NCBI GenBank assembly: GCA_977020255.1 | Contig: CDROCS010000506.1 | Location: 3,038,001 to 3,102,000, forward strand | Direction of reading: 5' to 3' | Source: Obrimoposthia wandeli | Taxonomy: Eukaryota | DNA: 64,000 nt | Shown here: one piece after another, positions 40,029-55,757 of the stretch | How positions within the stretch are numbered: the first letter of the stretch is position 1 | Layout: every line of letters starts with the position of its first letter | The notes under the pieces: model-generated | What the model saw: only the letters and a program-made list of their open reading frames with translations | What the model was told of the DNA's origin: nothing | Database searches by the model: none | Program-made: the position numbers and the translations under genes

Positions 40029-42935
40029 ATGAAAACCCATACCCCACTTGCCCAGTTAGAGCAGAACGATAATTTCGCCCGTCGCCACATTGGCCCTTGC
40101 GAAGAAGAAACTAAAGCAATGTTAACGAAAGTTGGCGCTGAATCTTTAGAAGACCTTATTCAACAAACTGTACCTAGCTCAATCTTATTGGCAGAAGACG
40201 TTGTTGCTGGCCATCAGTTATCTGAAGTTGCAGCACTGCAAGAATTAAAAGCCATCGCAGCGAAAAACACAGTAAACAAAAGCTACATTGGTATGGGCTA
40301 TTACGGTACTAACGTGCCGAATGTTATCCTACGTAACGTATTCGAAAATCCAGGCTGGTACACGGCATACACGCCTTACCAACCAGAAATTGCACAAGGT
40401 CGTTTAGAAGCACTGCTTAACTTCCAAACAATGACGTGTGATTTAACCGGCATGGACTTAGCAAGCGCATCACTCCTTGACGAAGCAACAGCAGCAGCTG
40501 AAGCAATGGCAATGTGTAAGCGTGTTTCTAAAAACAAAAAATCTGACAACTTCTTTATCGCCGACAGCGTACACCCACAAGTTGCTGACGTGATGATCGA
40601 ACGTGCGGAGCACTTCGGTTTCACTATTATTCAAGGTCCAGCAGCAACAGCCGCTGACCATGACTTGTTTGGTGCGGTACTTCAGTACCCAGGTACGAAC
40701 GGTGACGTAACAGATATCAGCGACATTATTGCTGCTATCCAAGCGAAAAAAGGTGTTGTTGCAGTTGGTTCTGATTTATTAGCACTTACGCGCATTAAAT
40801 CTCCTGCAGAACTGGGTGCAGACATCGCGTTTGGTAGTTCACAACGCTTTGGTGTACCAATGGGTTATGGCGGTCCACACGCGGCATTCTTTGCTACATG
40901 TGACAAACATAAACGTTCTATGCCAGGTCGTATCATTGGTGTTTCTAAAGACACACATGGTAAACCAGCTCTACGTATGGCTATGCAAACGCGCGAGCAA
41001 CACATTCGCCGTGAAAAAGCTAACTCAAACATTTGTACAGCGCAGGTATTACTAGCGAACATGGCTGGTTTCTACGCAACATATCACGGTCCTCAAGGCC
41101 TGAAAGATATTGCTAAGCGTGTACACCGTTTTACTGATTTATTAGCAGCTGGTCTTGTTAAAGGTGGTTTAAGCCTGACTAACAATACTTGGTTCGATAC
41201 AATCACAGTACAGTTAGATAACGAATTGTTAGATAACAAAGAAAAAGTTGTTACTCGTGCATTAGCAGCGGGCATTAACTTCCGTCTTGATTCTGAGCAC
41301 CAAGTTGGTATCAGCATCGATGAAACAATCACGCAAGCTGACCTAGCGACATTATTCGACGTATTACTTGGCGACGACCACGGTATCTCGATTGACGCAC
41401 TAGAAGCTGAACTGGCTGCAACAGGTAGCACGTCTATCCCTGCATCAGTTGAACGTGAATCTGCATTCCTAACACACCCAGTATTTAACTCTCATCATTC
41501 AGAAACAGAAATGATGCGTTATATTAAATCTCTGGAAAATAAAGATTTAGCCCTTAACCATTCAATGATTTCATTAGGCTCTTGCACAATGAAACTGAAT
41601 GCAGTTGCCGAAATGATCCCAGTAACATGGCCTGAATTCAGCAACATGCACCCGTTCTGCCCAGCAGACCAAGCGGTTGGTTATAAAGTGATGATTGACC
41701 TGTTAGAAGACTGGTTAGTTAGCATCACTGGTTACGATTCAATTTGTATGCAACCTAACTCGGGTGCTCAAGGTGAATATGCTGGTCTACTAGCTATCCA
41801 CAAATACCATGAGTCTCGTGGCGATTCACATCGTAACATCTGTCTTATCCCTAGCTCTGCGCACGGTACTAACCCTGCATCAGCGCAAATGGCGGGTCTG
41901 AAAGTTGTAGTAACTAAGTGTGATGCGAACGGTAACGTTGACGTTGAAGACTTACGTGAAAAAGCGATTGAACTGAAAGACAACCTTTCTTGCATCATGA
42001 TCACGTACCCATCGACACACGGTGTATACGAAGAAACGATTAAAGAAATCTGTGAAATCATTCATGACAACGGCGGCCAAGTTTACATGGACGGCGCGAA
42101 CATGAACGCACAGGTAGGTCTTACTTCACCTGGTTCTATGGGTTCTGATGTTTCTCACCTGAACTTACATAAAACATTCGCTATCCCACACGGTGGCGGT
42201 GGTCCAGGTATGGGTCCTATCGGCGTTAAAGCACACCTTGCACCATTTGTTGCTGGTCACGCTGTTGCAGACACAGGTAAAGAAAGCCGTAACAACGGTG
42301 CGGTATCTGCTGCACAGTTCGGTAGCGCAAGCATCTTGCCTATTACGTGGATGTACATCAACATGTTGGGTACAGATGGCCTGAAAGCGTCTACACAGAC
42401 AGCTATCTTGAATGCTAACTACCTAGCTCAAAACTTAGACCCACTGTTCCCAGTGCTTTATAAAGGCCGTAATGACCGTGTTGCTCACGAGTGCATCATT
42501 GATTTACGCCCACTTAAAGAAGCGACTGGTATCAGCGAGTCTGATGTTGCTAAACGTCTAATGGATTATGGTTTCCACGCGCCAACAATGAGCTTCCCAG
42601 TTGCGGGTACGCTGATGATTGAGCCAACTGAATCAGAATCTAAAGCTGAATTAGATCGCTTCATTCTAGCAATGACAGGCATCCGTGCTGAGATTGCTAA
42701 AGTTGAATCGGGTGAGTGGACTGCAGAACAAAGCCCACTACATAACGCACCACACACACTAGCTGATATTGTTGACGCTAACTGGGATCGTGCTTATGAC
42801 CGTGAAACTGCGGTTTACCCTGCTGCTTACGTGAAGAAAGACAAGTTCTGGCCTACAGTAAACCGCATCGATGATGTGTATGGCGACCGTAACTTATTCT
42901 GCTCATGCCCACCAATTGAAGCGTATAACGACTAA
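40029..42935 (+). CDS. gcvP: Glycine dehydrogenase (P protein)
   Basis: [38 protein letters not shown]. Confidence 0.99.
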
Positions 42936-42982: not shown

Positions 42983-43015
42983 AGCGAGTCCTGCGAAAGT
43001 AGGGCTCGCTTTTTT
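42983..43015 (+). terminator. gcv operon terminator, marking the left edge of the AT-rich island
   Basis: AGCGAGTCCTGC-GAAA-GTAGGGCTCGCT followed by a T-run. Confidence 0.88.
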
Positions 43016-43325
43016 GTTGGGTTTTTATTTATCCAAGACAACCCATCCTATGTTGCCAAAGTACTGTGTTTAGAATAATAAGTTATGGTTTTGTATAGTA
43101 TTATTCTTTTTATTATTAATTATTAATTTGTCTGGTAAAGGTATCAATCACCCTTGGTTTTAATTGAAAGTTTAATATAATCATATGCATAAATATTTTT
43201 AATGGTCTGCAAAACTTGATGTAAGTAACAGAGTTACACACTTTCTCTGTGGTAAATTCAATGTCGGATTGGCTTTATTAAATATTAAGACGTCAACTTT
43301 AGGTATATTTTTATAAAAATAAATA

Positions 43326-43778
43326 ATGGAGAAATTGATGCAGTTATACAGAGGTATCTCAGAGTCTACAGAAAGTAATTTGCTAGAAAATTTTTATCTA
43401 AAGACCCCTAGGAAGCCAAAAAATTCTCATATCAATGTACATGATGTTGCTGACAATTGGTTTTTAGATAAATTTGGAGTGAGAGCTAGAAGCCAGGCTA
43501 TATTTTGTACTACAGATATAGAACAGGCTAAAGAGTATGGCCAGCCATATAAAATTTCAATTCCTGAATCTGTAAAATTCAAGTTAATATTTAGTGTTCA
43601 CGTTAATGACTTTATCGAAATAGAGGCTGAAATCAGCGATGTTAATAATGATAAACAGATATTAGAGTGGCTAGAAAGTAAGTCATATGATGAGAAGACT
43701 TGTTTTAGTAAGTTGCCTAACGAACTAGATGGGGAAGTTATGCTTTACTGTGAAAGCTATGAGATTTTAAAGGTTTAG
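43326..43778 (+). CDS. Hypothetical protein with ADP-ribosyltransferase-like motif spacing (ART-1)
   Basis: LYRG, AIFCTTDIEQAKEYG and GEVML follow the R / aromatic-S/T / E order of ART folds. Fold call is by eye. Confidence 0.55.
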   Translation: MEKLMQLYRGISESTESNLLENFYLKTPRKPKNSHINVHDVADNWFLDKFGVRARSQAIFCTTDIEQAKEYGQPYKISIPESVKFKLIFSVHVNDFIEIEAEISDVNNDKQILEWLESKSYDEKTCFSKLPNELDGEVMLYCESYEILKV

Positions 43779-44855
43779 ATGATAGACACGGAAGAATTCC
43801 TAAAAAGTTTAGGCTTATTAAAGATTAACGGCTTTAGCTTTAAAAAAACGCTTGGTGGCGGAAGTGCTCTTAGTTGTTTGTATGTTCAAGGTAATGAAAA
43901 GGCAGTATTTAAATTTTTAATTTCACCTCGAAACACAATTGAATTAGAACGTTTTAAGCTTGAATGTTCAGTTTTAGAGATAAATATAGCAAACTCGAGC
44001 CGAACAAAATCCGGATTTAAGCCTCATGATGAAATGTTTATAGGGCCGAAAACTAGCTACCCTTTACCGACTATTAAATTTTCGTTTACGAGTAGATTTG
44101 AAAACCTAGTTAACTATTTTGCATACTCTTATGAAGAGGGGACGTTATTATCTGGGCTTGATACAAGCAGCTATAGCCTAGCAGATAAAACTTTACTCCT
44201 GTACCGCTTGGCGTCTGGTTTGAGTTATTTTAATCTCACTGGATATGCTCATCGAGACTTGCATCCTGAGAACATATTATTACTCGAAAATTATAATATG
44301 CCTCATAGTGAGAGGTATGGATCTGTTAACGATCCAAGAGTTAAATTTCTTGATATGGGGAATTGTCAACGTAATGACCTTGAGCGGGATTGGTTATATC
44401 GCATAAATCGAAATTTAAATGAAGATGTAGTTTTTCAGGATAATAATAGGCGAATATTATCGTCATTTGCATCGATGCCTCCTGACTTTTTAGAGAAAGG
44501 TGAGAATACACTAAATTATGATACTTGGTCATTTGGTGTCTATGCCTATAATTTACTGTTTGAAGAAATGCCATTTCATGCTGATCAAATTGGAGATGTA
44601 ACATTGCTTCTTAGAGGTCGGAGTTTTACGGGAAATTATAAAAGAAACTTAGACTCAGTATCTCTTGGCCTAAGATTGGTTTTAAACCATTTGCTGTCGC
44701 CAAATGGTAACGATCGGCCATCAATAGATGCAATTGTTCGTTTGTTTAGTTGGTTAGTAGATAGAGAGGAAGAGTTCCGAGAGCGTAGTTTTATTAATCA
44801 AGTAATCCACTCTGGTGGTTTTGATCCAAATTATGACCAGAGGTACGACGATTAA
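43779..44855 (+). CDS. Hanks-type Ser/Thr protein kinase (kinase-1)
   Basis: LGGGS, VFKF, HRDLHPENILL, FLDMG, PPD, YDTWSFG. ATG immediately follows the ART-1 stop. Confidence 0.9.
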   Translation: MIDTEEFLKSLGLLKINGFSFKKTLGGGSALSCLYVQGNEKAVFKFLISPRNTIELERFKLECSVLEINIANSSRTKSGFKPHDEMFIGPKTSYPLPTIKFSFTSRFENLVNYFAYSYEEGTLLSGLDTSSYSLADKTLLLYRLASGLSYFNLTGYAHRDLHPENILLLENYNMPHSERYGSVNDPRVKFLDMGNCQRNDLERDWLYRINRNLNEDVVFQDNNRRILSSFASMPPDFLEKGENTLNYDTWSFGVYAYNLLFEEMPFHADQIGDVTLLLRGRSFTGNYKRNLDSVSLGLRLVLNHLLSPNGNDRPSIDAIVRLFSWLVDREEEFRERSFINQVIHSGGFDPNYDQRYDD

Positions 44856-45158
44856 GAGTTGTGAAAGTTAACAGATCATACTGTTTAATAATGATTTTCA
44901 ACATGTGGCCGTTTTACTGTGAATTATATGTTCTATTCACAGGTTTTACTTAACCCACATCTTAAATCGGTGGCTATTTTATAAAAATATATTTAGGACT
45001 TATTTTAGATGAAATATCGAGATTCTAATTTAGTTGGTAAGACTTAGTGAATAATATTTAAATGTATTAAAATATATAATCTACATGTTTAATTTTGTAC
45101 TTAAGCTAAATAATTATAATTACATTTTTATTAAATTTTAATATAAAAGAAGTGGTGA

Positions 45159-46232
45159 GTGCATTTGAGTACTATAGATCTAATGAAGTTGCTTAGCATT
45201 GATAAAGTTGCAAGCAGATACGAAATACTAGAGCAACTGGAAGAAGGTAAAGGAGCTCGGAGCTTTAAAGGGATTGATATAAGTACAGGTTACCCAGTAT
45301 TTATGAAATATTTATTATTCCCATCGAATCAATACGAAATATCTAAGTTCCAAGCTGAGGTGGAAGTAACTAAAGTTATTTCATCACGAGAAAGTTCTGG
45401 TCTAGGAAGTATTTGTGCAAAATACTTACACCATGAAATAATGTTCGATAATGATTTATATTGTTTAATTACGGAATGGAACACTGCACCAACTTTAACA
45501 CAATGGTTGAATGATAACAGTGACGCAAATATAGAAACACGCTTTGAACTAGTTCACCGAATATGCAACGCTGTAGGACGTATTCCATCTGGATTCCATC
45601 ACAGAGATTTACACCCAGGAAATATACTTGTTGAGGATATAAAGGTTGATTGGCATCAAGACATATCGGATGTAGGAATAAAAATTATCGACTGGGGTGA
45701 GGCTCTTCCTGAATCACTTTATGGCTTTGAGGACTCCCCCGAATTTATAATTGAGCTAATAGATAATACCCCAAAGAAAATAGAAGGTTCTTATTATAGT
45801 TTACCACCTGAAGTTTTTTTACCATGGGAAGTTAGAAAAACTCAATGGGGTAAATATGATGCATGGCCAATAGCACTATTGATGTACAAAATAATGACGG
45901 GTAATGACTTGATAGAGCATGATGATTTAGGTTCATATATAAATGCTATTAATAAAGGGGGGTTAGGTAACGCCATTAGAACCGCTACATCTGAATTAAG
46001 TCAATTAGATATGAGTGGCGCGCAATTATTAACTGCAGTGTTCGGGAAAATATGTGAACCTGACGTGTTAAAACGAGAAACATTGTCCTATGTTAGTAGG
46101 GTTATATGGGACATGAGAATTGAAGGTTTTAATCCTAAAGATCTAAATGTAAAATATCGATATTTATTAAACCCGTTTGATTACATACCACCTGGAGGAT
46201 GGCGGTATTCTTCTGTTTTTGATTATAATTAA
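45159..46232 (+). CDS. Hanks-type Ser/Thr protein kinase (kinase-2)
   Basis: FMKY, HHRDLHPGNILV, IIDWG, LPPE, YDAWPIA. Alternative ATG at 45183. Confidence 0.88.
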   Translation: MHLSTIDLMKLLSIDKVASRYEILEQLEEGKGARSFKGIDISTGYPVFMKYLLFPSNQYEISKFQAEVEVTKVISSRESSGLGSICAKYLHHEIMFDNDLYCLITEWNTAPTLTQWLNDNSDANIETRFELVHRICNAVGRIPSGFHHRDLHPGNILVEDIKVDWHQDISDVGIKIIDWGEALPESLYGFEDSPEFIIELIDNTPKKIEGSYYSLPPEVFLPWEVRKTQWGKYDAWPIALLMYKIMTGNDLIEHDDLGSYINAINKGGLGNAIRTATSELSQLDMSGAQLLTAVFGKICEPDVLKRETLSYVSRVIWDMRIEGFNPKDLNVKYRYLLNPFDYIPPGGWRYSSVFDYN

Positions 46233-46235
46233 AAG

Positions 46236-46705
46236 ATGTTAGAATTAAATTATACAGAGGTTTAAACTTTTCTGTTGAAAGTAGTGTTTAGATAATCCAT
46301 TTAAAACGAAAGCTAGAACCCCAATACATACACCTAAATTTATTCATGACATTGCAGATTCTTGGTTTCAAGACCAATTAGAAATTAGAACTAGGAGTGA
46401 GTGTATTTTCTGTACCCTTTATATCCATATCGCTTTAGTTATGCCAAGGGATATAAAGAAAGTACACTAGTCGAAATAACCCCTTTAGACAACTCCTTAT
46501 TAATATTTAGTGAACAAGTTGATGATTTCAATGAACACATACCTGATAGGGGATCAATCGTCAGGAAATATATAATTGGTTAAGCCAGCAAGATTATAAA
46601 AAAGTAGATTCAATAGAAAAACTGCCCGCAGATTTTTTTGGATAGGTGATGCTTTCATGTGATAAGTATGTTGTAAAAATAATAGAAAGGTTTACTAATA
46701 GTTAG
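46236..46705 (+). pseudogene. Full-length pseudogenised paralog of ART-1 (ART-2)
   Basis: Fragments across frames: KLYRGLNFSVESSV / LDNPF...IHDIADSWF...RSECIFCT / YAKGY...LIFSEQVDDF / QEIYNWL...KLPADFFG*VMLSC. These align end-to-end with ART-1. Confidence 0.9.
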
Positions 46706-46818
46706 CCAATAGAGTAGCGGCGGAGCAATGACTTCACCGAAATCCCCTTTTCCTATTTTAGTAAAGGGGGATTACCGCTGAAAATGTAAATTGAAGAATC
46801 AAAATATAGGATAATTAA

Positions 46819-47304
46819 ATGTTTGAAAACCCTTCAGATCAGGCTAGATTAGTCACTGTTCTACTTACAGCTTTTATAACTATAATAGTAGTTTATTATA
46901 ATCAACAAAGAACAAGCAAAAGAGAAGAAGCTAAGGTTAAGTTAGAAAAACTGGAAGAAATAGGTCGGTCTATAAATAATGCTGCGCTTCTCATAAATAG
47001 ACATTTGGAAAAATATGGGGGTGCTTCTTTCTCTGTTAGTCAGAATAGAAAATTAGTTGATAACGAATATTTAAATGAAGCCCTAACACTGTTAATAAAT
47101 GCAGAGCTTCTTGAAGTGATTCATTTTAATAATGATAATGTCTTCGTTGATAACATAACTAAGCTGGTCAGCACTACAAGTAACCTATTAATTTCAAATG
47201 ATAGTCTCTCTATAGAAAATCATCGAAAACAATACTACAAAACTAATGGCATTCTTTTAAGTAGAAATAATACTAGAATAAAAACAATACTTGGTAGAAT
47301 TTAG
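46819..47304 (+). CDS. Hypothetical protein with a single N-terminal TM helix
   Basis: LVTVLLTAFITIIVVYY followed by a charged helical segment; AT-rich codons. Confidence 0.65.
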   Translation: MFENPSDQARLVTVLLTAFITIIVVYYNQQRTSKREEAKVKLEKLEEIGRSINNAALLINRHLEKYGGASFSVSQNRKLVDNEYLNEALTLLINAELLEVIHFNNDNVFVDNITKLVSTTSNLLISNDSLSIENHRKQYYKTNGILLSRNNTRIKTILGRI

Positions 47305-47332
47305 AAACTAAAGGCTAGATTTATCACTCTTA

Positions 47333-47583
47333 TCATGTTGTTTTTGAGAACGGATTCAACCTAACCGCATCCTCTAAATGCTCTGGTGCAAAATGTGAAT
47401 ATTTCATCGTATCAACAATTGATGCGTGACCCTGTATTCGCTGTAGCACCAGAATATTACCGCCATTCATCATAAAATAACTAGTAAACGAGTGTCGTAA
47501 CGCATGGCTAATTTTCCTTTCGGGTAATTAAAATCCTGTATGCTCTACCGCATTGACTAAATGCTTGTAAGCCGTTGCTAAAC
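47333..47583 (-). pseudogene. int: C-terminal remnant of a P2/HP1-type phage tyrosine integrase
   Basis: Minus strand 47527-47333 reads LPERKISHALRHSFTSYFMMNGGNILVLQRIQGHASIVDTMKYSHFAPEHLEDAVRLNP. In-frame TAA at 47530-47528; no N-terminal part. The upstream limit is approximate. Confidence 0.9.
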
Positions 47584-47713
47584 AAATTTCAACAATTTAT
47601 CTAACGTATAGTGCATCCATTATTGTCCTCACCCCAATACAAACCCTTACAGTCATAAATATATTTATCCCTATAATCGAGTGCACATCCTCTCGATTTA
47701 GGGAAACCACTTT

Positions 47714-48508
47714 ATGCACTTTTTTACACTGAAAAACTCTGCAATATTATCCGTCACTGCCGCCCTGTATTTAACGGCTTGCACTCATACCGCGCAAGCC
47801 AGCAACGTAGTCAAAACCGTCACTAACGGTGCATTAACTTTCGAGCTCGAATTCGAAGATGAACTATACCTCGAGGGCGGCAGAGAATTGATGTGGAGCG
47901 ATGCGTTGCAGCAACCTTATATCGAGGCAGCCAACCAATGGTTAACGGCATTAGTCGGCGTCGAGGGGAAACAGCAGCACACCATCCGCATGCGGATCGC
48001 GGTGGCAGAAATGAATGACGGTAATGGTTACGCTGGCCCTGATTCTGAAGAACAAATCGGTGACTACGAGATACCAACCAGCGGTACCTTAGTTATCGGT
48101 AATCATACCTACGAACAAGGCTTTGATCAGGTCGAGTTTAAAGCCAACATCCTCCATGAAATGGGGCACATCCTTGGCATCGGTTCGTATACTGAAAAGT
48201 TCACCGAATACAGCGAGGAACTCCAAGGCAATGTATTGAAAGTGCCACACAGTATGGCTGCGCAAAAATATAACCAGATATACGGTAACAGCTATCAGTA
48301 TGTACCAATCAGTGATGACGGCGGTCACTTGTATGATTATGTACTGCAAGAAGACAAAAAACGGGTATTGGATAACGGTAAAGTGTTAGCGCCATTAACC
48401 CAAGAATTTATGGCCAATGGTGTGGTCTTTGGCGCAGTGACGCTAGGGGTACTCGATGATATTGGTTATGTGGTTTCTTATAGTGGGGCAGAGAGTTATA
48501 AGCCTTAA
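47714..48508 (+). CDS. Leishmanolysin (M8)-like zinc metalloprotease lipoprotein
   Basis: Lipobox LTAC, LHEMGHILGIG, downstream GGH and EFM (third ligand and Met-turn-like). Confidence 0.7.
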   Translation: MHFFTLKNSAILSVTAALYLTACTHTAQASNVVKTVTNGALTFELEFEDELYLEGGRELMWSDALQQPYIEAANQWLTALVGVEGKQQHTIRMRIAVAEMNDGNGYAGPDSEEQIGDYEIPTSGTLVIGNHTYEQGFDQVEFKANILHEMGHILGIGSYTEKFTEYSEELQGNVLKVPHSMAAQKYNQIYGNSYQYVPISDDGGHLYDYVLQEDKKRVLDNGKVLAPLTQEFMANGVVFGAVTLGVLDDIGYVVSYSGAESYKP

Positions 48509-48525
48509 CGTCACAAATATATGCT

Positions 48526-48694
48526 CCCTATAATCGACCACACATCCTCTCGATTTAGGGACACCACTTCATGTCCTTTTTTATACTGAAAAACTCTGCA
48601 ATATTATCCGCCACTGCCGCCTATATTTAACGGCCTGCACTCATACCACGTAAGCTAGTCACTTTGTTAAAGCCGTTACTAACGGTGCATTAAC
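48526..48694 (+). repeat. Diverged direct repeat of 47669-47838 (5' UTR plus signal-peptide coding region); truncated second copy
   Basis: Both copies begin CCCTATAATCGA and end ACTAACGGTGCATTAAC. Copy 2 has a 1-bp deletion giving MSFFILKNSAILSATAAYI*. Confidence 0.92.
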
Positions 48695-48926
48695 CTTATC
48701 TCTATATCGCTAAATAATTTTATTAAAGACTGCCTTACTGATTAAGTAACGCCTAGTTACAGCATTAAATATTAATAAATGACAGCCTGTCGATAAAAGT
48801 GTTGAAATACAAAACGAAAAAACAACATTACCCCATAATAATAAATTGTTGTTTCAAATTAACTTTTTATTTTTTTTATTACCGTATATTCAACTGAATG
48901 TCATCAACCAATCAAAGGACTGAACC

Positions 48927-49607
48927 ATGAGGACACTAAAAAAACAGAGTGTATATATTGTTTCTAAAGATAGAGCCTGGAGAAATTTGATCGTTGCTAG
49001 CCTTTCCGCCGCTTTTCAATGCCGCGGCTTTGTGGAAGAAAACTCAGTTGAAAACCTATGGAACCTACATCATAGCGACATTGTTGTGTTCGATAAATTA
49101 ACATTAAAAAACCCCACATCATTGTGTGTTTATCCTATTGAACGAGGCGGGAAATGGCTAATCGTTAATGCTGGGGACGTTGATGAACAAAATGTTGTTG
49201 GCATCATCGCCCTTGGTTTTTCGGGATTAATTACCACGCCATTCACCTTTGAAATGCTGCCTAGAGCCTTACGTACAATCACAACGGGCCAATTATGGTT
49301 CAGTCGAGATGCGATGTCTCAAACATTAAGAACCCTAATAACGCAGGCAGGATCTTTGCACAATTCAGCGGATATATTAGGGGCTAAATATGCCCTTACG
49401 AATAGAGAATCACAGGTGTTGAATCACCTTTTACAGGGGGAAAGCAATAAAGAAATTGCGGCCCAATTATATCTCAGCCCCAGTACAGTCAAGTGTCATG
49501 TTTCTAGTATCTTATTAAAAACGGGTAAACATAGTCGCTGTGAAATCGGCATGCTTCTGATGAAGGAAAAAGAAGATAGTGCGCTTGCGGCATCATCGAC
49601 AGTGTAA
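48927..49607 (+). CDS. LuxR-type regulator, VpsT/CsgD-like
   Basis: Degenerate receiver domain, LWFSR motif, LTNRESQVL...GESNKEIA...SPSTVKCHVSSI helix-turn-helix. Confidence 0.85.
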   Translation: MRTLKKQSVYIVSKDRAWRNLIVASLSAAFQCRGFVEENSVENLWNLHHSDIVVFDKLTLKNPTSLCVYPIERGGKWLIVNAGDVDEQNVVGIIALGFSGLITTPFTFEMLPRALRTITTGQLWFSRDAMSQTLRTLITQAGSLHNSADILGAKYALTNRESQVLNHLLQGESNKEIAAQLYLSPSTVKCHVSSILLKTGKHSRCEIGMLLMKEKEDSALAASSTV

Positions 49608-49611
49608 AACG

Positions 49612-49716
49612 ATTCAACATTCAACATTCAACATTCAACATTCAATACTTAATATTAAACATTAAACATTAAACATTAAACACTAAACACTAAACACTAA
49701 ACACTAAACACTAAAC
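49612..49716 (+). repeat. In-register heptamer tandem array of 15 units
   Basis: (ATTCAAC)4 ATTCAAT ACTTAAT (ATTAAAC)4 (ACTAAAC)5. Confidence 0.95.
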
Positions 49717-49885
49717 ATTCATATTTCAAAAATTAAGATTAAAAATAAAAACTTAATTAGGCCAAAACTAGTTATCTTTTTACCACTCAAGTAGCCAACT
49801 GGCCGATGTAAATAATTCGATTAAAGGTTAAATTAAATCAAGTTATTTTTTTGGAAGCAAGTTGTTTAATCGAGAGGGAAATATT

Positions 49886-50407
49886 ATGAAATATTTAATG
49901 AATAGTATGGCGATAGCACTAGCATTAGTTCTTTCAGCCGGCGCAAATGCCAAAACATGGGGTAGCGACCCTGATACTCACCCAAATGGTGAAAGCCAAT
50001 TTAACATTGCACTTACCGGTGATGTTCCTCAGCGTTGTCGTATAGTGACCCGACAAAATCTATTAATTGAATTGGATCTAGATGACAAAGGTGCACAAGC
50101 GAGTAAGTTCAAATTCAAAGCTTGGTGTAACACCGGATCTACAAATGGTAATTTAGTGGTTGGTGGTTTCGAGACCTTTCAAAACGAGCGTGGCAATGTA
50201 ATTCCACTAGCGATTGCCTTTAATGGAGCCAATGGTCGTATTGAAACAGGCGATAAACGTGCCTTCGAACAAAATATGCAGGTTTCGAATGCGACTGACG
50301 GTTCAATGGGCCCCCTCAATACACTGAAAATAAAACCCGTCGTGAATGGTTTTGAAGACGCGGGTAATTATACAACCAGCATGTATGTAGCGCTGTACCC
50401 TAGATAG
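49886..50407 (+). CDS. Putative major pilin of a chaperone-usher system
   Basis: Signal peptide ending ANA, two Cys, C-terminal alternating strand YVALYPR; first gene of the cluster; GAGGGA RBS before ATG 49886. Confidence 0.65.
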   Translation: MKYLMNSMAIALALVLSAGANAKTWGSDPDTHPNGESQFNIALTGDVPQRCRIVTRQNLLIELDLDDKGAQASKFKFKAWCNTGSTNGNLVVGGFETFQNERGNVIPLAIAFNGANGRIETGDKRAFEQNMQVSNATDGSMGPLNTLKIKPVVNGFEDAGNYTTSMYVALYPR

Positions 50408-50429
50408 TCATAAATATAGCTAAATAATC

Positions 50430-50448
50430 AGGGGCCTTTGGGCCCCTT
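50430..50448 (+). terminator. Hairpin after the pilin gene
   Basis: AGGGGCC-TTTG-GGCCCCT; short stem with a weak U-tract. Confidence 0.5.
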
Positions 50449-50461
50449 ATGAGAGTGGTCT

Positions 50462-51157
50462 ATGCGATTATTTACAACCTTGTTGATTGCGATTGTCCTG
50501 TTTTCTCCCGTTACTTATGCCTTTGAACTTTTCCCTATGGTCACGTTTTTATCAGACCAAGGAAGTAAAAGTGAATATTTTTACCAAGTCAATAACACGA
50601 CGGATAAAGCCTTACCGCTAGAGATTTTCGTTAAGCAACGCAATATATCCGGTGAAGAGTCTGAACTGTTGAGCGACTCTGAAGATTTCTTTGTTTTTCC
50701 ACCTCAGGTACTTATCCAGCCGGGAAAAACACAAATGATAAAAGTTAAATATATTGGTGAACCTGTCGATATTTCTACATCTTACCGTATCGTCTTTAGC
50801 CAATTACCTATCAATGATAACGCGACCAAAAGCAGTATCAAAATGCTATTCCAAATTGGCGCACTCGCGTTTGTTTCTGCAAATAACGTGCAAAATATTG
50901 CTACCGCAGAAATAATTTATCAAGACAAAATACCAACACAAATGCAGATAACAAACCAAGGCTCTGGCGTCATTGTTATTCCAGAACTGTCTTTTTCTGT
51001 AATAAGTGAGCATGCGAGTTACACATGGCAATGGGATGATCTTAAGCACTTATTCGATCGACAATTTCTTGTTCCAGGAGAGATCGTTAATGTAGCTATG
51101 GATACATTACTATTACCGCAAGATAGCGCAGCATCGGTAACTATAACGGTGGAGTAG
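50462..51157 (+). CDS. Periplasmic pilus chaperone
   Basis: Signal peptide; FFVFPPQVLIQPGKTQMIKV and SYRIVFSQLP, PapD-like N domain. Confidence 0.85.
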   Translation: MRLFTTLLIAIVLFSPVTYAFELFPMVTFLSDQGSKSEYFYQVNNTTDKALPLEIFVKQRNISGEESELLSDSEDFFVFPPQVLIQPGKTQMIKVKYIGEPVDISTSYRIVFSQLPINDNATKSSIKMLFQIGALAFVSANNVQNIATAEIIYQDKIPTQMQITNQGSGVIVIPELSFSVISEHASYTWQWDDLKHLFDRQFLVPGEIVNVAMDTLLLPQDSAASVTITVE

Positions 51158-53623
51158 GTGATGAAGGGAACTTACCAACAGTTTCCCCCTGCATACCTGT
51201 GGATATTGGTTCTAATATTGCTGATAACATCCGGACATACAATCGGAATGACCTTTTCACTGCCGCTTGAGATTAATGGGCGAGAAATAGGTTCACTGCC
51301 GGTCTCGTTAGATGGAGCTGAAGTCAATGCTGTGTCACTGACCTCGCTAAAATCGATACTCGGCCCTCGCGTATCTGACGTTGTTTGGCAAGCCCTGTTA
51401 GCGAAGCATATAAAAAATGATGCCGCTGATGCCATGGTGCCACTTACAAGTATTGCAGAACAAGGGATAGACCTGATATTCAGCTCAGCTAAGCTGATTC
51501 TTACTGTAGACATATCACCAGAGGCGTTTGGTCAATCTAATGTCGATTTTGGTGAAGAGTTTAATTTATTCATCCCTTCTAAAAGTGGCAATTTTAGTTG
51601 GTTAAACAGTATTAACTTTACGCATAACCAGAGCTGGCAGGCTGACAGCAGTGATAACTTTTCTTCCGTCGATTGGCTTGGACAGATAAATATCGGTGGT
51701 GCCAACGGTTTCAATATGGTGACGGCCAATTACCTCGAAGTAGCCGACAATGATACCAATATGTTCCGCGGTGAGTGGAAAGCATTTTACGATAATCCCA
51801 GCGCACCATTTAGGCTATCTGTCGGTGATGTTTTATCGGGGGCAAGTTCAGGTTCCGTAGGCCATCTTTCTAATATGAGCTTAGGTGGTTTGTCGATTAA
51901 GAGTGATTATGCCGAGTTGCAACCCGAACGCACTATTGGCCCTAATAATAGCCAAGAGCTGATCCTTAATGAAAGTGCTGCAATAGACGTTAGCATCAAT
52001 GGCCAAGTTATTTTCAGTGGTCGCCAAGAGGCTGGTCGCTATAACCTGAGCAACTTACCCATGGCCAATGGCGCCAACGATATCGTCGTTAATATCACTT
52101 ATCTTTCAGGCAGAACCGAGCGACTTATCTTTAGCCAGTTCTACAACAATAACTTACTTAATGAAGGCATGATCAATTATGGCGCTACCGTCGGGGTCCC
52201 GTCTATTTTTACCGACGAAGGTATCGAGTATCTAGATTCATGGGCAGTAACCGGATTCGCTGAATACGGGGTGTCATCTTGGTTAACGCTAGGCGGTAAT
52301 AGCGCGGTTGCCAAATATGGTCAGGTGCTGGGAACGACTGCAACGCTAGGAACTGATTGGGGCAATTTATCTGGGCGTTTGTCTTTTAGTAATCTGGAAA
52401 ATACGGGCGCTGGTAATATCCTGTCATTCACCTTTGAAAAAAGCTCATTAAGCAGTAAAAAAGACAACACATATAATTTCAGATTAGGTATCGATTTTGC
52501 CGATTCATTTACGACGACAATCTGGGATGCGGATACTGTGGTGACATCATACGATCGCTATTTAGCCCATTATGTCTGGCTGTTTAATGAGCATTGGGAT
52601 GCCACATTATCAGGTGATTATTCTAAAGAAGCGCTAGGGGATGAAAATACTAACGCGACGTTTAAATTAAGCTATAAAACGGGTAATTGGACCTTTGGTT
52701 CTGGCGTTAATTACCAAGAAAGTGAGCAGTATAATGATGCTGATATCGAATACTTTTTCACTTTTGACTGGCGTAATACGAATATTAACAGTGGCATAAA
52801 CTTTAGTGCCAATTATGACAGTGTTAATAATCACGCCAGCCTAGACCTTAATCGAACGGGTCAAGACCGTGTCGGTAGTGTCGGTTATCGCGTGCAGGCT
52901 GAATATGAAGATAACCGCGACAGCCAGACTGCCCAGCTTACGTATACCGCCAACAGAGTTAGGTTAGAGGGCGAAGTTGAGCGTAACAAAACCCGCAGTA
53001 GTGACGCCTCTTATTCTGCCTCTATTCGCGGTAATACTGCTATTGGTATTGTTGATGGCAAGGTCGGTTGGGGACGAGCAACTGATGGCCCATTCATGGT
53101 TACCCATCTTCACCCCTCGTTATCTGGACAAGAAGCACAGCTGGGTACGGGACAGCAAGAGGACTATAAAGCGGCAGCTAATAGGGTCATTGGAGGATTA
53201 TTACCGCTGGACGTGGCTTACAGCCAAAACATTATCGATGTCAACGTACCCAATGCGCCTGTCGGTTATGACTGGGGAGAAAGCCGAATCATAATATCTC
53301 CTGGCGCTACTACTGGTCACTTCTTAATGATCGGCTCGGATAATGCTTATACCGCAAAGGGTGTTTTAAAAGATGCGAATGGCGACCCTATTTCCTACTT
53401 GCAGGGGCAAATTGTCAGTGACAAGTCACAACTATCATTCTTTACAAATAAAGCCGGACGCTTCTATGTACAAGGCATAGGCCCCGGGAAATACACAGTA
53501 ATAATAGCGGATGACAAATATGAATCGCTATCAATAGTGATTGAACAAGCTGATAGCCATTTAATTGAACTTGGCACGCTAAACATAAAATGTATCAAGG
53601 AGAATTGCGATGAAGATCTTTAA
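51158..53623 (+). CDS. Outer-membrane fimbrial usher
   Basis: 821 aa, beta-rich; SLGGLSIKSDY, GRYNLSNLPMANGANDI, FFTNKAGRFYVQGIGPGKY. Confidence 0.85.
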   Translation: MMKGTYQQFPPAYLWILVLILLITSGHTIGMTFSLPLEINGREIGSLPVSLDGAEVNAVSLTSLKSILGPRVSDVVWQALLAKHIKNDAADAMVPLTSIAEQGIDLIFSSAKLILTVDISPEAFGQSNVDFGEEFNLFIPSKSGNFSWLNSINFTHNQSWQADSSDNFSSVDWLGQINIGGANGFNMVTANYLEVADNDTNMFRGEWKAFYDNPSAPFRLSVGDVLSGASSGSVGHLSNMSLGGLSIKSDYAELQPERTIGPNNSQELILNESAAIDVSINGQVIFSGRQEAGRYNLSNLPMANGANDIVVNITYLSGRTERLIFSQFYNNNLLNEGMINYGATVGVPSIFTDEGIEYLDSWAVTGFAEYGVSSWLTLGGNSAVAKYGQVLGTTATLGTDWGNLSGRLSFSNLENTGAGNILSFTFEKSSLSSKKDNTYNFRLGIDFADSFTTTIWDADTVVTSYDRYLAHYVWLFNEHWDATLSGDYSKEALGDENTNATFKLSYKTGNWTFGSGVNYQESEQYNDADIEYFFTFDWRNTNINSGINFSANYDSVNNHASLDLNRTGQDRVGSVGYRVQAEYEDNRDSQTAQLTYTANRVRLEGEVERNKTRSSDASYSASIRGNTAIGIVDGKVGWGRATDGPFMVTHLHPSLSGQEAQLGTGQQEDYKAAANRVIGGLLPLDVAYSQNIIDVNVPNAPVGYDWGESRIIISPGATTGHFLMIGSDNAYTAKGVLKDANGDPISYLQGQIVSDKSQLSFFTNKAGRFYVQGIGPGKYTVIIADDKYESLSIVIEQADSHLIELGTLNIKCIKENCDEDL

Positions 53624-54515
53624 CTCAGTGCAAGTCAGTTGTGCACTTTTACTGCTATTGTTTACCGTCTCGTTCTCTGGATTGGCGATCACACCAAGTG
53701 AAGATAACCAAGCAGCTTGTACTGGTAATTGGCATATTGAATTTAAAACCAATTCATCCACTGAAGAAAAGAGCGGACGCAGGGGAGTTTGGATCCCCGG
53801 GGTTATTTATCTCGATAGAAGGTTAGCGACATGTGCTAAATATGTAATCCTTACACCACCGCAAAGAGGTGCGCTGCTGTTGCGCGGTGCTCGCTCTCAA
53901 CATCGTTATGAATTAAAGAATAGTGCTCGTCAAACTCTGACTGTGATAGGTAAAAACAACTATTACATTCCAGTATTGGGTAAGCAAAAATTGGATTTAT
54001 GGTTATATATACCAGGCGGTAAAGACTTCGCTCCGGGGCGCTATCAAGGCACACTCGATGGGGTATTAAATAATAATACCGCGAATGAAATATCGAAGAG
54101 AACGTACACCTTTAATTATCAGGTTGAGCCATATGTCCGAGCTAAAATAGCAACGCTTGCTGGCAGTTGGAATCAGTCATCAGGAACATCTGTGCGCCTT
54201 CACTTGGGGGATTTAACCGCAAAAAACAGTCGTGATTTACCCATATATATAGAAAGTAATGGCCTTGTCAGTATGACGGTGACTTCTTTGAATAAAGGCA
54301 GTCTGGTGAGTGTTACAAATAAGCAAAACAAGGTGCCTTACCAACTCTATTTTCGCGGTAAAAGAATAGACTTAATGAGTCAAACGGCGTTTAGGCTAAA
54401 CAACCGTCAATCTTCTCAACAAAAAATGATCATGTCATTTCAAAATACAGCCAAACCTTTTGCTCGTGCAGGGCAGTATGAAGATATAGTCACTATCAAT
54501 TTAAATGCGAGATAG
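53610..54515 (+). CDS. Putative pilus tip/minor subunit
   Basis: Overlaps the usher stop; signal peptide, Cys pair, C-terminal AGQYEDIVTINLNAR pilin-type strand. Confidence 0.65.
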   Translation: MKIFNSVQVSCALLLLLFTVSFSGLAITPSEDNQAACTGNWHIEFKTNSSTEEKSGRRGVWIPGVIYLDRRLATCAKYVILTPPQRGALLLRGARSQHRYELKNSARQTLTVIGKNNYYIPVLGKQKLDLWLYIPGGKDFAPGRYQGTLDGVLNNNTANEISKRTYTFNYQVEPYVRAKIATLAGSWNQSSGTSVRLHLGDLTAKNSRDLPIYIESNGLVSMTVTSLNKGSLVSVTNKQNKVPYQLYFRGKRIDLMSQTAFRLNNRQSSQQKMIMSFQNTAKPFARAGQYEDIVTINLNAR

Positions 54516-54701
54516 CATGTATTTAGCAGAAAAGAGTCAAAGTTTAGAGCCTGAAGAATAAATCGGTTGGTAAACGCTAAAACTCAATAATGTCGGAAAT
54601 GTTCAATCTTTGCCTGTGTGATATCGCTATTATTAACTCATCAATTTGGTGCAGGCACTGAATAACAGCATTAATCATTATTAATAGACGAGATCATCAT
54701 C

Positions 54702-55757
54702 ATGAATACAGCCATGAACATTACGCCAACACTGCCTCAGTTAGGCTGGAAACCATTTTTCCAACAACAACTGACGTTAGAAGAACTGACTGAATTTATG
54801 ATTGGTCGCGTTGTAGAACAACACCGCAGCAGCCTTGTGGTGATGGCTGAACAAGGCCAAGTCACGTTAACCTTAGCGCCAAACAGCGAGCGCGTTTGTG
54901 TTGGTGACTGGGTATTGTTTGACGAGTCGTTAAGAGCTTATAGAAGCTTAGAACGCCAATCATTGTTTGATCGTAAAGCGCCGGGTTCAAAGGTTGATAC
55001 GCAACTGATTGCCGCGAATATCGACAGCGTGATGATCGTGTGTTCGTTGAATAACGATTTTAACTTAGGCCGTATTGAGCGTTACCTTGCAGTTGCTAAA
55101 GAAGCGCAGGTTGAACCTGTAATTATATTAACCAAAGCCGATTTATGTGACGACGTTGCCGGTAAGCAAGCGGAAGTACAAGCGCTTGATTCATTGCTTG
55201 CTGTGTATGCGGTTAATGCGTTAGACAGCCAAGATCTAGCGCAGCTTAGTAGTTTCTGCAAATCAGGTAAAACCGTGGCCTTTTTAGGTTCATCTGGTGT
55301 GGGTAAATCGACCTTAGTGAATGGCCTGTTAGGGATTGAATCGCAGCAGACGGGTGGCATTCGTGAGGATGATAGCAAAGGTCGCCATACGACAACGTAT
55401 CGCGCATTAAAAATGTTGCCTCAAGGCGGCATGCTAATGGATACCCCAGGCATGCGCGAATTACAACTAAGCAGTTGTGAGACTGGCGTGAGCGAAACCT
55501 TCAGTGAAATAACCGCTATCGCAGCGCAGTGTCGCTTTGGTAATTGTTCGCACGACAGTGAACCGGGCTGTGCGGTTAGAGCTGCAATTGAAGATGGTTC
55601 TTTGCCATTAAGACGCCTAACAAGTTATCAAAAACTAAACCGCGAGCAAGCCATGAATAGCGCGACGTTAGTAGAAAAAAGATCGAAAGATAAAGCGTTA
55701 GGAAAATTAATTAATAATGCGCAAAACGAAGCTAAGCGTTTTAAGAGAGGGGGCTAA
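54702..55757 (+). CDS. rsgA: RsgA/YjeQ family circularly permuted GTPase (paralog type)
   Basis: TKADL, GSSGVGKST, GRHTTT, DTPGMRE, CRFGNCSHDSEPGC zinc finger. Confidence 0.88.
   Translation: MNTAMNITPTLPQLGWKPFFQQQLTLEELTEFMIGRVVEQHRSSLVVMAEQGQVTLTLAPNSERVCVGDWVLFDESLRAYRSLERQSLFDRKAPGSKVDTQLIAANIDSVMIVCSLNNDFNLGRIERYLAVAKEAQVEPVIILTKADLCDDVAGKQAEVQALDSLLAVYAVNALDSQDLAQLSSFCKSGKTVAFLGSSGVGKSTLVNGLLGIESQQTGGIREDDSKGRHTTTYRALKMLPQGGMLMDTPGMRELQLSSCETGVSETFSEITAIAAQCRFGNCSHDSEPGCAVRAAIEDGSLPLRRLTSYQKLNREQAMNSATLVEKRSKDKALGKLINNAQNEAKRFKRGG

Follow-up and report, generated by a model that had tools for sequence, protein, structure and literature searches.

In the TglT/TakA pair of Mycobacterium tuberculosis, a protein kinase acts as the antitoxin by phosphorylating the toxin (PMC7205606). 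DarTG and CmdTAC each combine a small NAD+-dependent toxin of the ADP-ribosyltransferase (ART) type with a cognate partner that keeps it in check, and give defence of the abortive-infection type (PMC11618068; LeRoux 2022 via PMC13069673). In this study, a stretch of 64,000 nucleotides (contig CDROCS010000506.1 of the Obrimoposthia wandeli assembly GCA_977020255.1, positions 3,038,001 to 3,102,000; hereafter the window, to which all coordinates refer unless another locus is named) was analysed for an island in which genes for Hanks-type protein kinases adjoin genes for small ART-like proteins. Kinase and small protein both look like enzymes from their sequences, and the pair is probably an undescribed two-gene module of the defence or toxin-antitoxin kind, built on a protein family without annotation. 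PADLOC, NCBIfam and Pfam contained no named system for the pair and returned only weak, generic kinase-domain matches, and no description of it was found in the literature on kinase and ART defences, defence-discovery screens and ART-superfamily neighbourhoods. This agrees with an earlier note on the same DNA, written without database searches, in which no named system was recognised.

The island carries two modules in mirrored order on the plus strand. The first small gene, ART-1, is intact. Its longest open reading frame (ORF) spans 43326-43778 and encodes 150 aa; the ATG at 43338, giving a protein of 146 aa (43338-43778), is more likely to be the start because all homologues begin there and a GGAG sequence lies 6 nt upstream. 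The K1-type kinase-1 (358 aa, 43779-44855), also intact, follows directly, with the TAG stop codon of ART-1 abutting the ATG of the kinase at a gap of 0 nt. The second module begins with the K2-type kinase-2, an intact ORF of 357 aa (45159-46232); its true start may lie a few codons past 45159, as orthologues begin approximately 6-8 codons after the GTG at that position. Behind it lies the remnant of a second small gene, ART-2, a pseudogene with outer bounds of approximately 46236-46696. The remnant is paralogous to ART-1, with similarity well beyond chance (tblastn, E 2e-11; family hidden Markov model (HMM), E 5e-13), and is 50-53% identical to intact orthologues of its own type (tblastn, best E 3e-28). 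Depending on the query, tblastn aligned it in 2-4 pieces with 1-3 frame switches; the pieces lie in three reading frames, and the gene has therefore suffered at least two, possibly three, frameshifts. Module 1 (small protein followed by kinase) is thus intact, and module 2 (kinase followed by small protein) keeps its kinase with a frameshifted small gene. Together with a membrane ORF on the plus strand and an integrase fragment on the minus strand, these are the genes that the earlier note had listed, and its 0-nt junction is confirmed by ORFs that end at 43778 and start at 43779.

Homologues of the pair were collected from approximately 45 loci in Vibrionaceae, Pseudoalteromonas, Marinomonas, Catenovulum, Cobetia, a Pantoea plasmid and metagenomes, and in these the small protein is nearly always immediately adjacent to a kinase of the same family. 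Every recovered contig with an ART-1 homologue has a Pkinase gene of 356-359 aa directly 3′ of it, and the loci of kinase-2 homologues have a small-family gene of 151-157 aa at the 3′ side (E 1e-39 to 1e-45), the exception being L023/24. All small-protein matches with a family-HMM E<1e-35, found in 19 loci, adjoin a family kinase. In a metagenome scan, the kinase was adjacent in 18/19 loci, with the small protein preceding the kinase in 17 and the order reversed in one. Gaps between the two genes range from 0-9 nt to short overlaps, and the pair on the Pantoea agglomerans plasmid again has a gap of 0 nt. Both gene orders occur, and the order tracks the kinase type exactly. In one protein, P0019 (508 aa), the two are naturally fused, residues 1-149 being the small protein and the kinase following. 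Pairwise distances among small proteins and among their own kinases were correlated (r=0.89, n=20 pairs), a value reached in 0/2000 permutations. No third conserved gene was found across 38 loci. Queries with single kinases against viral contigs found nothing, the patterns being too specific. These results show that the pair is a self-contained, co-inherited unit. The earlier note had named a failure of the homologues to co-occur as the finding that would refute its proposal; in essentially all loci that were inspected, the small protein had a kinase with an HRDLHP motif beside it.

The four-gene layout, described as mirrored in the note, also recurs elsewhere. It is intact and in the same order in L022, a metagenomic contig of 20.8 kb, whose kinases are 58.5% identical to kinase-1 and 56.5% identical to kinase-2. 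In Pseudoalteromonas lipolytica (L009), a K1-type kinase stands head-to-head with a K2-type kinase and its intact small gene, and of the K1-linked small gene only the last 19 codons remain after a deletion. K1-type and K2-type modules thus adjoin in three independent loci, and each of the two decayed cassettes, in the window and in P. lipolytica, keeps exactly one small gene. Kinases without a small partner were found (kinase-2 of the window, L009, L023/24 and L055), and a kinase-linked type of small protein without a Hanks-type kinase was found only once, in L037. For a structural description of the complex, the natural fusion and the four-gene cassette of L022 offer suitable material.

At L037 (351-800, and 1024-1923 on the minus strand), the kinase-less small protein is flanked by a convergent gene with a Zeta-toxin domain. 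A jumbo-phage protein in BFVD, A0A2L0UZ96, combines the small-protein fold with a Zeta-toxin domain. On account of these two cases, the small-protein fold may partner kinases of two unrelated folds.

Kinase-1 and kinase-2 scored 47.8 and 48.7 bits against the Pfam Pkinase profile (cut-off 31.7 bits) and are approximately 21% identical to each other. Kinase-1 is 68-70% identical to the kinases adjoining ART-1 homologues, and homologues of kinase-2, found in P. lipolytica, Cobetia and metagenomes, are 35-63% identical. In an alignment of 31 non-redundant family kinases, K45 (strand beta-3), E62 of helix C, the HRD motif, N165, DxG, PP[DE], DxW and a late Arg were invariant, and the catalytic loop read HRDLHPxN, His always replacing the canonical Lys. 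Similarity to solved kinases was generic only. The best PADLOC matches of both kinases were mad6 (at most 54 bits) and PD-T4-6, which were weak, partial and confined to the generic kinase core. The PD-T4-6 models gave 34.6-37.6 bits (E 1e-9 to 3e-10) with approximately 60% of the model covered, short of a full-length match, and the NCBIfam MAD6 equivalog gave 26.9 and 22 bits, far below its cut-off of 460. No other genes of the methylation-associated defence system (MADS) were found in the island. Matches to the MkoA model were also weak and partial.

The small protein had no match in Pfam, NCBIfam or PADLOC, and comparison with PDB sequence profiles, using both shallow and deep alignments, gave chance-level matches only. 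Its structure was modelled with AlphaFold2. The models of ART-1 and of a phage member had predicted local distance difference test (pLDDT) scores of 93.6 and 92.6, respectively, and both contain six core strands in the order expected of the ART core fold. In Foldseek searches, the best PDB match of both models was 2aua (BC2332), with a probability of 0.63-0.80, an E value of 0.05-0.1, a TM-score (template modelling score) of up to 0.52 when normalised to the query, and a sequence identity of 7-11%. Pertussis S1, TccC3, TreX, OspC3, EcPltA and a PolyVal ART were among the lower matches, the whole listing running over E values of 0.05-1 and probabilities of 0.06-0.80. SCOP assigns BC2332 to the ADP-ribosylation superfamily (PMC3000352), and active sites of the diphtheria-toxin type were matched to it by a template method (PMC3024214).

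Conserved residues of the small protein fall at corresponding places of the fold. R9, in the LYRG motif on strand 1, is R in 47/51 sequences and K in 4/51. Position 62, at the end of strand 2 and followed by a helix, is S or T in 50/51, within a motif [FI]-C-[ST]-[TP] that is a partial STS (Ser-Thr-Ser). E137 is invariant in 51/51 and in the phage branch as well, and lies in a G-E-[VI]-M motif opening strand 5. Because the R/[ST]/E residues are arranged as expected and the closest fold matches belong to the superfamily, the modelled small protein is rated as a likely but unproven member of the ADP-ribosyltransferase superfamily with an R-S-E layout. The label "ART" that the earlier note had attached to it has moderate support: the residue layout and the fold match to 2aua speak for it, and the weakness of the fold matches and the lack of any profile match leave it short of an assignment.

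Only 15 close relatives of ART-1 were found among 5.8 billion clusters; they come from Photobacterium, Aliivibrio, Vibrio and metagenomes, are 58-70% identical to it and are all unannotated. A profile search gave 2,396 representative clusters at E<=1e-3, of which 41 reached E<=1e-30; the family counts roughly 450 members at E<=1e-10. Most of the wider family are proteins of approximately 200 aa, the sampled ones being phage-encoded, and the small protein is clearly homologous to these (hhalign probability 100, E 3e-42). Two PHROGs, 11975 and 15932, matched the small protein, both of unknown function, and many paralogues are present in the jumbo phages Atu_ph07 and SCTP-2. If the proposed function is confirmed, it would provide a first functional handle on a family of approximately 2,400 clusters that is unannotated in bacteria and phages alike.

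Several arrangements of these relatives were also observed. Phage relatives of approximately 200-230 aa, all unannotated, form tandem arrays of up to seven paralogues, and in some phages they lie between virion genes resembling T4 gp13 and gp15 (loci L047, 306-5614; L044, L045 and L048; and L020/L021, 6001-6621). The domain occurs together with a GNAT acetyltransferase in P0128, and at the C-terminus behind N-terminal regions without a family match in P0111 (508 aa) and P0070 (367 aa).

Neighbouring genes were compared among the loci. The type I restriction-modification genes hsdM-hsdS-hsdR lie directly upstream of the pair in Catenovulum (L017), in L022 and at the locus of the fusion P0019, and in L017 a SMODS/SAVED pair resembling a cyclic-oligonucleotide-based antiphage signalling system (CBASS) is found further along. 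Gabija-like AAA_15/TOPRIM and UvrD genes lie upstream in L034 and L040; these two associations are independent, as the pairs are only 39-47% identical to each other. In L034, a C5-methylase and HNH pair is also located downstream of the small-protein and kinase genes. Other neighbours included RES-Xre and ParE-Phd pairs, a satellite-like island with integrase and VapE-primase, TniQ/TnsD genes (Tn7-like) and resolvases. One prophage in IMG/VR has the pair at its end, next to genes for tail fibre and baseplate. Solo kinases also sit in mobile-element hot spots, one beside an integrase (L023/24) and a more distant one in a P2-like prophage, flanked by the integrase and the tail genes (L055). The pair is thus cargo of prophages, satellite-like islands, plasmids and Tn7-like elements and lodges among restriction-modification, Gabija-like and CBASS genes. 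Recurrence in defence islands or prophages had been raised in the earlier note as a point to check, and the pair was found in mobile elements, in defence islands and at the one prophage end.

Two further loci are recorded here. Homologous C5 cytosine methylase genes lie downstream of the solo K2-type kinase in L023/L024 (8001-12280) and of the full pair in L034 (6874-8935); the methylase gene is followed by a gene for a HATPase_c_3 protein in L023/24 and by one for an HNH nuclease in L034. On the Ralstonia solanacearum megaplasmid CP023017.1 (L014, 1127-8964), a distant relative of the small protein is encoded directly upstream of a VgrG gene, in a same-strand run that contains Pkinase, UvrD-like ATPase and hypothetical genes.

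The island itself is the remnant of a mobile defence island in a Moritella chromosome, at a recombination hot spot just 3′ of gcvP. The GcvT protein encoded in the window shares 97% identity with its counterpart in a Moritella sp., and judging from this identity the host appears to be a marine Moritella. The gcvP gene ends at 42935 and is followed on the plus strand by an imperfect GC-rich hairpin and a T6 run (approximately 42983-43015), read directly from the sequence as the likely gcvP terminator and lying at the left edge of conserved Moritella synteny; a simple terminator scan made no call on this element. By blastn, four Moritella loci, including GCA_000170855.1, were collinear with the window up to 43020-43022, and in one of them (L049, break at 43022) synteny picked up again at 47638. 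As synteny stops at 43022 and returns at 47638, the borders of the strain-variable, horizontally acquired island of 4.6 kb were set at 43023-47637. The GC content is 33.0% in the island versus 41.8% in the remaining window, falling from approximately 0.45 to 0.29-0.37 across 43000-47500. Of the Ile codons, 59% are ATA in the island versus 6% in core genes; of the Arg codons, 52% are AGA or AGG versus 2%. Composition and codon usage mark the block as foreign, and bear out the earlier description of an AT-rich block, rich in ATA, AGA and AGG codons, right after a gcv terminator. No att-like direct repeats were found flanking the island, and no RNA family or notable tandem repeat was found inside it.

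In other Moritella strains, the slot after gcvP is occupied by different cargo: a NACHT/NA-iREase2 protein together with one that has a RelA_SpoT domain, or else small ORFs that include a NarE-like ART (L050). On a metagenomic contig whose gcvP is 68% identical to that of the window, a diverged small-protein and kinase pair lies 199 bp from the gcvP end. Because the cargo differs among Moritella strains and a diverged pair occupies the slot in another lineage, the downstream flank of gcvP is a recurrent insertion hot spot, apparently a new defence hot spot in marine Gammaproteobacteria. The loci that bear on the variability of this flank are L049-L052 and L038, to be compared with window positions 43016-43022 and 47638.

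The right part of the island contains a remnant of a tyrosine-recombinase (integrase) gene on the minus strand, within 47333-47590, which matched PHROG integrase families (E 3.5e-13). Approximately the last 75 codons are left, with one internal stop, the N-terminal 265 codons or so having been deleted; the short minus-strand ORF 47333-47473 is the integrase tail. By tblastn, the remnant corresponds to residues 265-339 of the 342-aa integrase of L001, with 52% identity, and this integrase adjoins a small-protein and kinase pair in Photobacterium phosphoreum. The remnant had been taken for a P2/HP1-type integrase and the island for phage cargo. Neither description is supported: the remnant has no similarity to a P2-like prophage integrase, and Pfam and PHROG scans found no phage structural genes in the island, which retains an integrase stub only and lies in a chromosomal hot spot. 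With some 75 C-terminal integrase codons and no match to a P2-like integrase, a P2/HP1-like prophage is not indicated.

Two other features lie within the borders. The modules are separated by an AT-rich spacer of 303 bp (44856-45158, plus strand), at the equivalent place of which the intact cassette L022 has 112 bp. Module 2 probably has its own promoter within this spacer; promoter-like sites in a consensus scan, which is uninformative in AT-rich DNA, were not more frequent than in shuffled sequences. The membrane ORF (46819-47304, plus strand, 161 aa) has one N-terminal hydrophobic helix, with a hydropathy peak at residues 9-27, and no family match above threshold in Pfam, PADLOC or NCBIfam. 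It was considered as a third component of the module and rejected, having no counterpart beside the pair in other loci; it is island cargo and not a conserved part of the module. To the right of the island (47714-55757) are a lipoprotein-like ORF with a borderline leishmanolysin (Peptidase_M8) match (20.7 bits versus a cut-off of 21), a regulator of the LuxR/GerE type (48927-49607), and a fimbrial cluster with a PapD-like chaperone (50462-51157) and an usher (51158-53623).

What the pair does was then considered. The chances are about even that it is an anti-phage module of the abortive-infection or toxin-antitoxin-like kind, in which the kinase controls an ART-like effector, and this is the most likely explanation. 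The small protein and the kinase would form a 1:1 complex, with the kinase as the sensing and controlling partner. As in type VII toxin-antitoxin systems, the kinase would restrain the effector, either by binding it or through phosphorylation at a conserved Ser/Thr. Infection would upset this control, and the freed ART-like protein would then modify a host or phage target using NAD+, stopping phage production. The small protein is favoured as the effector because its active-site-like residues are kept, because it was found without a Hanks-type kinase only once (L037, beside the Zeta-toxin-domain gene) and because kinases outlive their partners; this asymmetry of loss is consistent with an effector dependent on its kinase or neutralised by it. 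The direction of control, favoured as just described, is the weakest step of the mechanism. Pointers to the kinase as antitoxin are indirect, namely the tight coupling, the natural fusion, the conserved Ser/Thr columns and the survival of kinases after partner loss.

A number of observations weigh against this proposal. On the enzymatic side, the small protein has a single Glu, the first E/Q of the ExE/QxE motif being absent, and no sequence-profile match to a curated ART family was obtained in Pfam, NCBIfam, PADLOC or PDB profiles. Profile comparison with the Moritella NarE-like ART (L050) aligned the 7-residue LYRG motif alone, with a probability of 2%, and the fold matches (Foldseek E 0.05-0.1, probability 0.63-0.80) make a weak ART assignment. 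On the side of control, the family kinases that stand alone in mobile-element hot spots (L023/24 and L055) suggest that the kinase itself is possibly the effector, and cross-regulation is inseparable from simple decay because one small gene survives in each decayed cassette, that of the window and that of L009. Phages themselves carry many close relatives of the small protein, which agrees as well with a sensor or decoy role as with that of effector. The association with defence islands was judged from approximately 15 informative loci.

Some of these observations agree with a different division of labour, the main rival explanation, which is possible but somewhat doubtful. The kinase would be a growth-arresting effector like Stk2 or PD-T4-6, and the small protein a non-catalytic or sensing subunit through which a phage cue switches the kinase on, perhaps derived from, and mimicking, the abundant phage family. 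Solo kinases in a P2-like prophage (L055) and beside an integrase (L023/24), the intact state of kinase-2 in the window after decay of its partner, and the weak matches to PD-T4-6 and mad6 are consistent with this, as are the clear homology of the small protein to the phage proteins and the location of the phage genes in virion-module neighbourhoods and tandem arrays. However, the invariant Glu and the polar residues shared by the bacterial and phage branches resemble an active site and not a binding surface, and kinases that persist alone are not easily reconciled with a small subunit that acts as inhibitor.

Two other explanations were considered. A role for the pair as a mere addiction (toxin-antitoxin) module, stabilising mobile elements with no dedicated anti-phage function, is improbable. 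As a closely coupled two-gene unit that occurs on plasmids, integrative islands and prophages, adjoining other toxin-antitoxin pairs (RES-Xre and ParE-Phd) and losing its toxin-like gene while the partner is kept, a pattern typical of toxin-antitoxin erosion, the pair is in keeping with such a module. Its repeated siting behind restriction-modification operons, in Gabija-like and CBASS clusters and in a hot spot that also holds NACHT-type genes is nevertheless more specific than general carriage by mobile elements, and many toxin-antitoxin modules are also defences, hence the explanation overlaps with that of a kinase-controlled anti-phage effector. Least probable by far is that the proteins are secreted or injected effectors, carried as type VI or type III cargo and acting on other cells. 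The distant Ralstonia relative just upstream of a VgrG gene and the presence of the toxin ARTs pertussis S1, TccC3, TreX and OspC3 among the weak fold matches would agree with secretion, but the proteins start at the first core strand and have no signal peptide, PAAR/Rhs/MIX or other delivery domain. Moreover, a secretion gene is adjacent in 0 of the approximately 45 kinase-linked loci, and the Ralstonia locus has a kinase and a helicase in the same gene run.

Returning to the kinase-controlled ART-like effector, a more far-reaching version of it can be formulated, which we regard as unlikely. The pair would represent a new class of immune module in which the kinase gates the ART-like effector by phosphorylation, the small subunit shares ancestry with the phage family, and phages use the relatives as matching weapons or decoys. 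The double cassette would be cross-wired, either small subunit serving both kinases; the survival of exactly one small gene in each decayed cassette would be accounted for in this way. Quite apart from this version, the pair, if its anti-phage function is confirmed, would add a new candidate defence system in which both enzymes, the kinase and the ART-like protein, are of the signalling type. It raises the question of phosphorylation as a switch on an NAD+-using effector in bacterial immunity.

Comparison with described systems places the pair as follows. The wider family of the small protein, like the phage ART-type proteins (Alt, ModA and ModB of T4 together with the PolyVal ARTs), is abundant in large myoviruses. 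PolyVal ARTs are among its weak fold matches; no named Alt or Mod match for the family was found in PHROGs, Pfam or BFVD, and a likeness to Alt/Mod is not borne out. Of the PDB structures, both predicted models come closest to the BC2332-like branch (2aua). BC2332 itself has not been characterised and, unlike the small protein, has no known kinase partner. Compared with DarTG and CmdTAC, the partner here is a protein kinase and not a macrodomain/NADAR hydrolase or an antitoxin with a SecB-like chaperone. The small protein matched no DarT, CmdT or other ART profile in Pfam and PADLOC, and no conserved macrodomain/NADAR or SecB-like neighbour genes were found across the 38 loci. For control of an effector by a kinase, the nearest precedent in mechanism is TglT/TakA, whose enzyme toxin is neutralised through phosphorylation by an atypical Ser/Thr kinase encoded next to it (PMC7205606). 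The TglT toxin is a nucleotidyltransferase and not ART-like, no sequence relationship to the present pair was seen, and, in contrast to TglT/TakA, we only infer phosphorylation of the small protein here. PD-T4-6 and Stk2 of Staphylococcus, the latter likened by description only, are likewise Hanks-type kinases carried in defence islands or prophages. The kinases of the present family differ from them in having the HRDLHPxN catalytic loop and, in the main subfamily, in being tied or even fused to a small ART-like partner.

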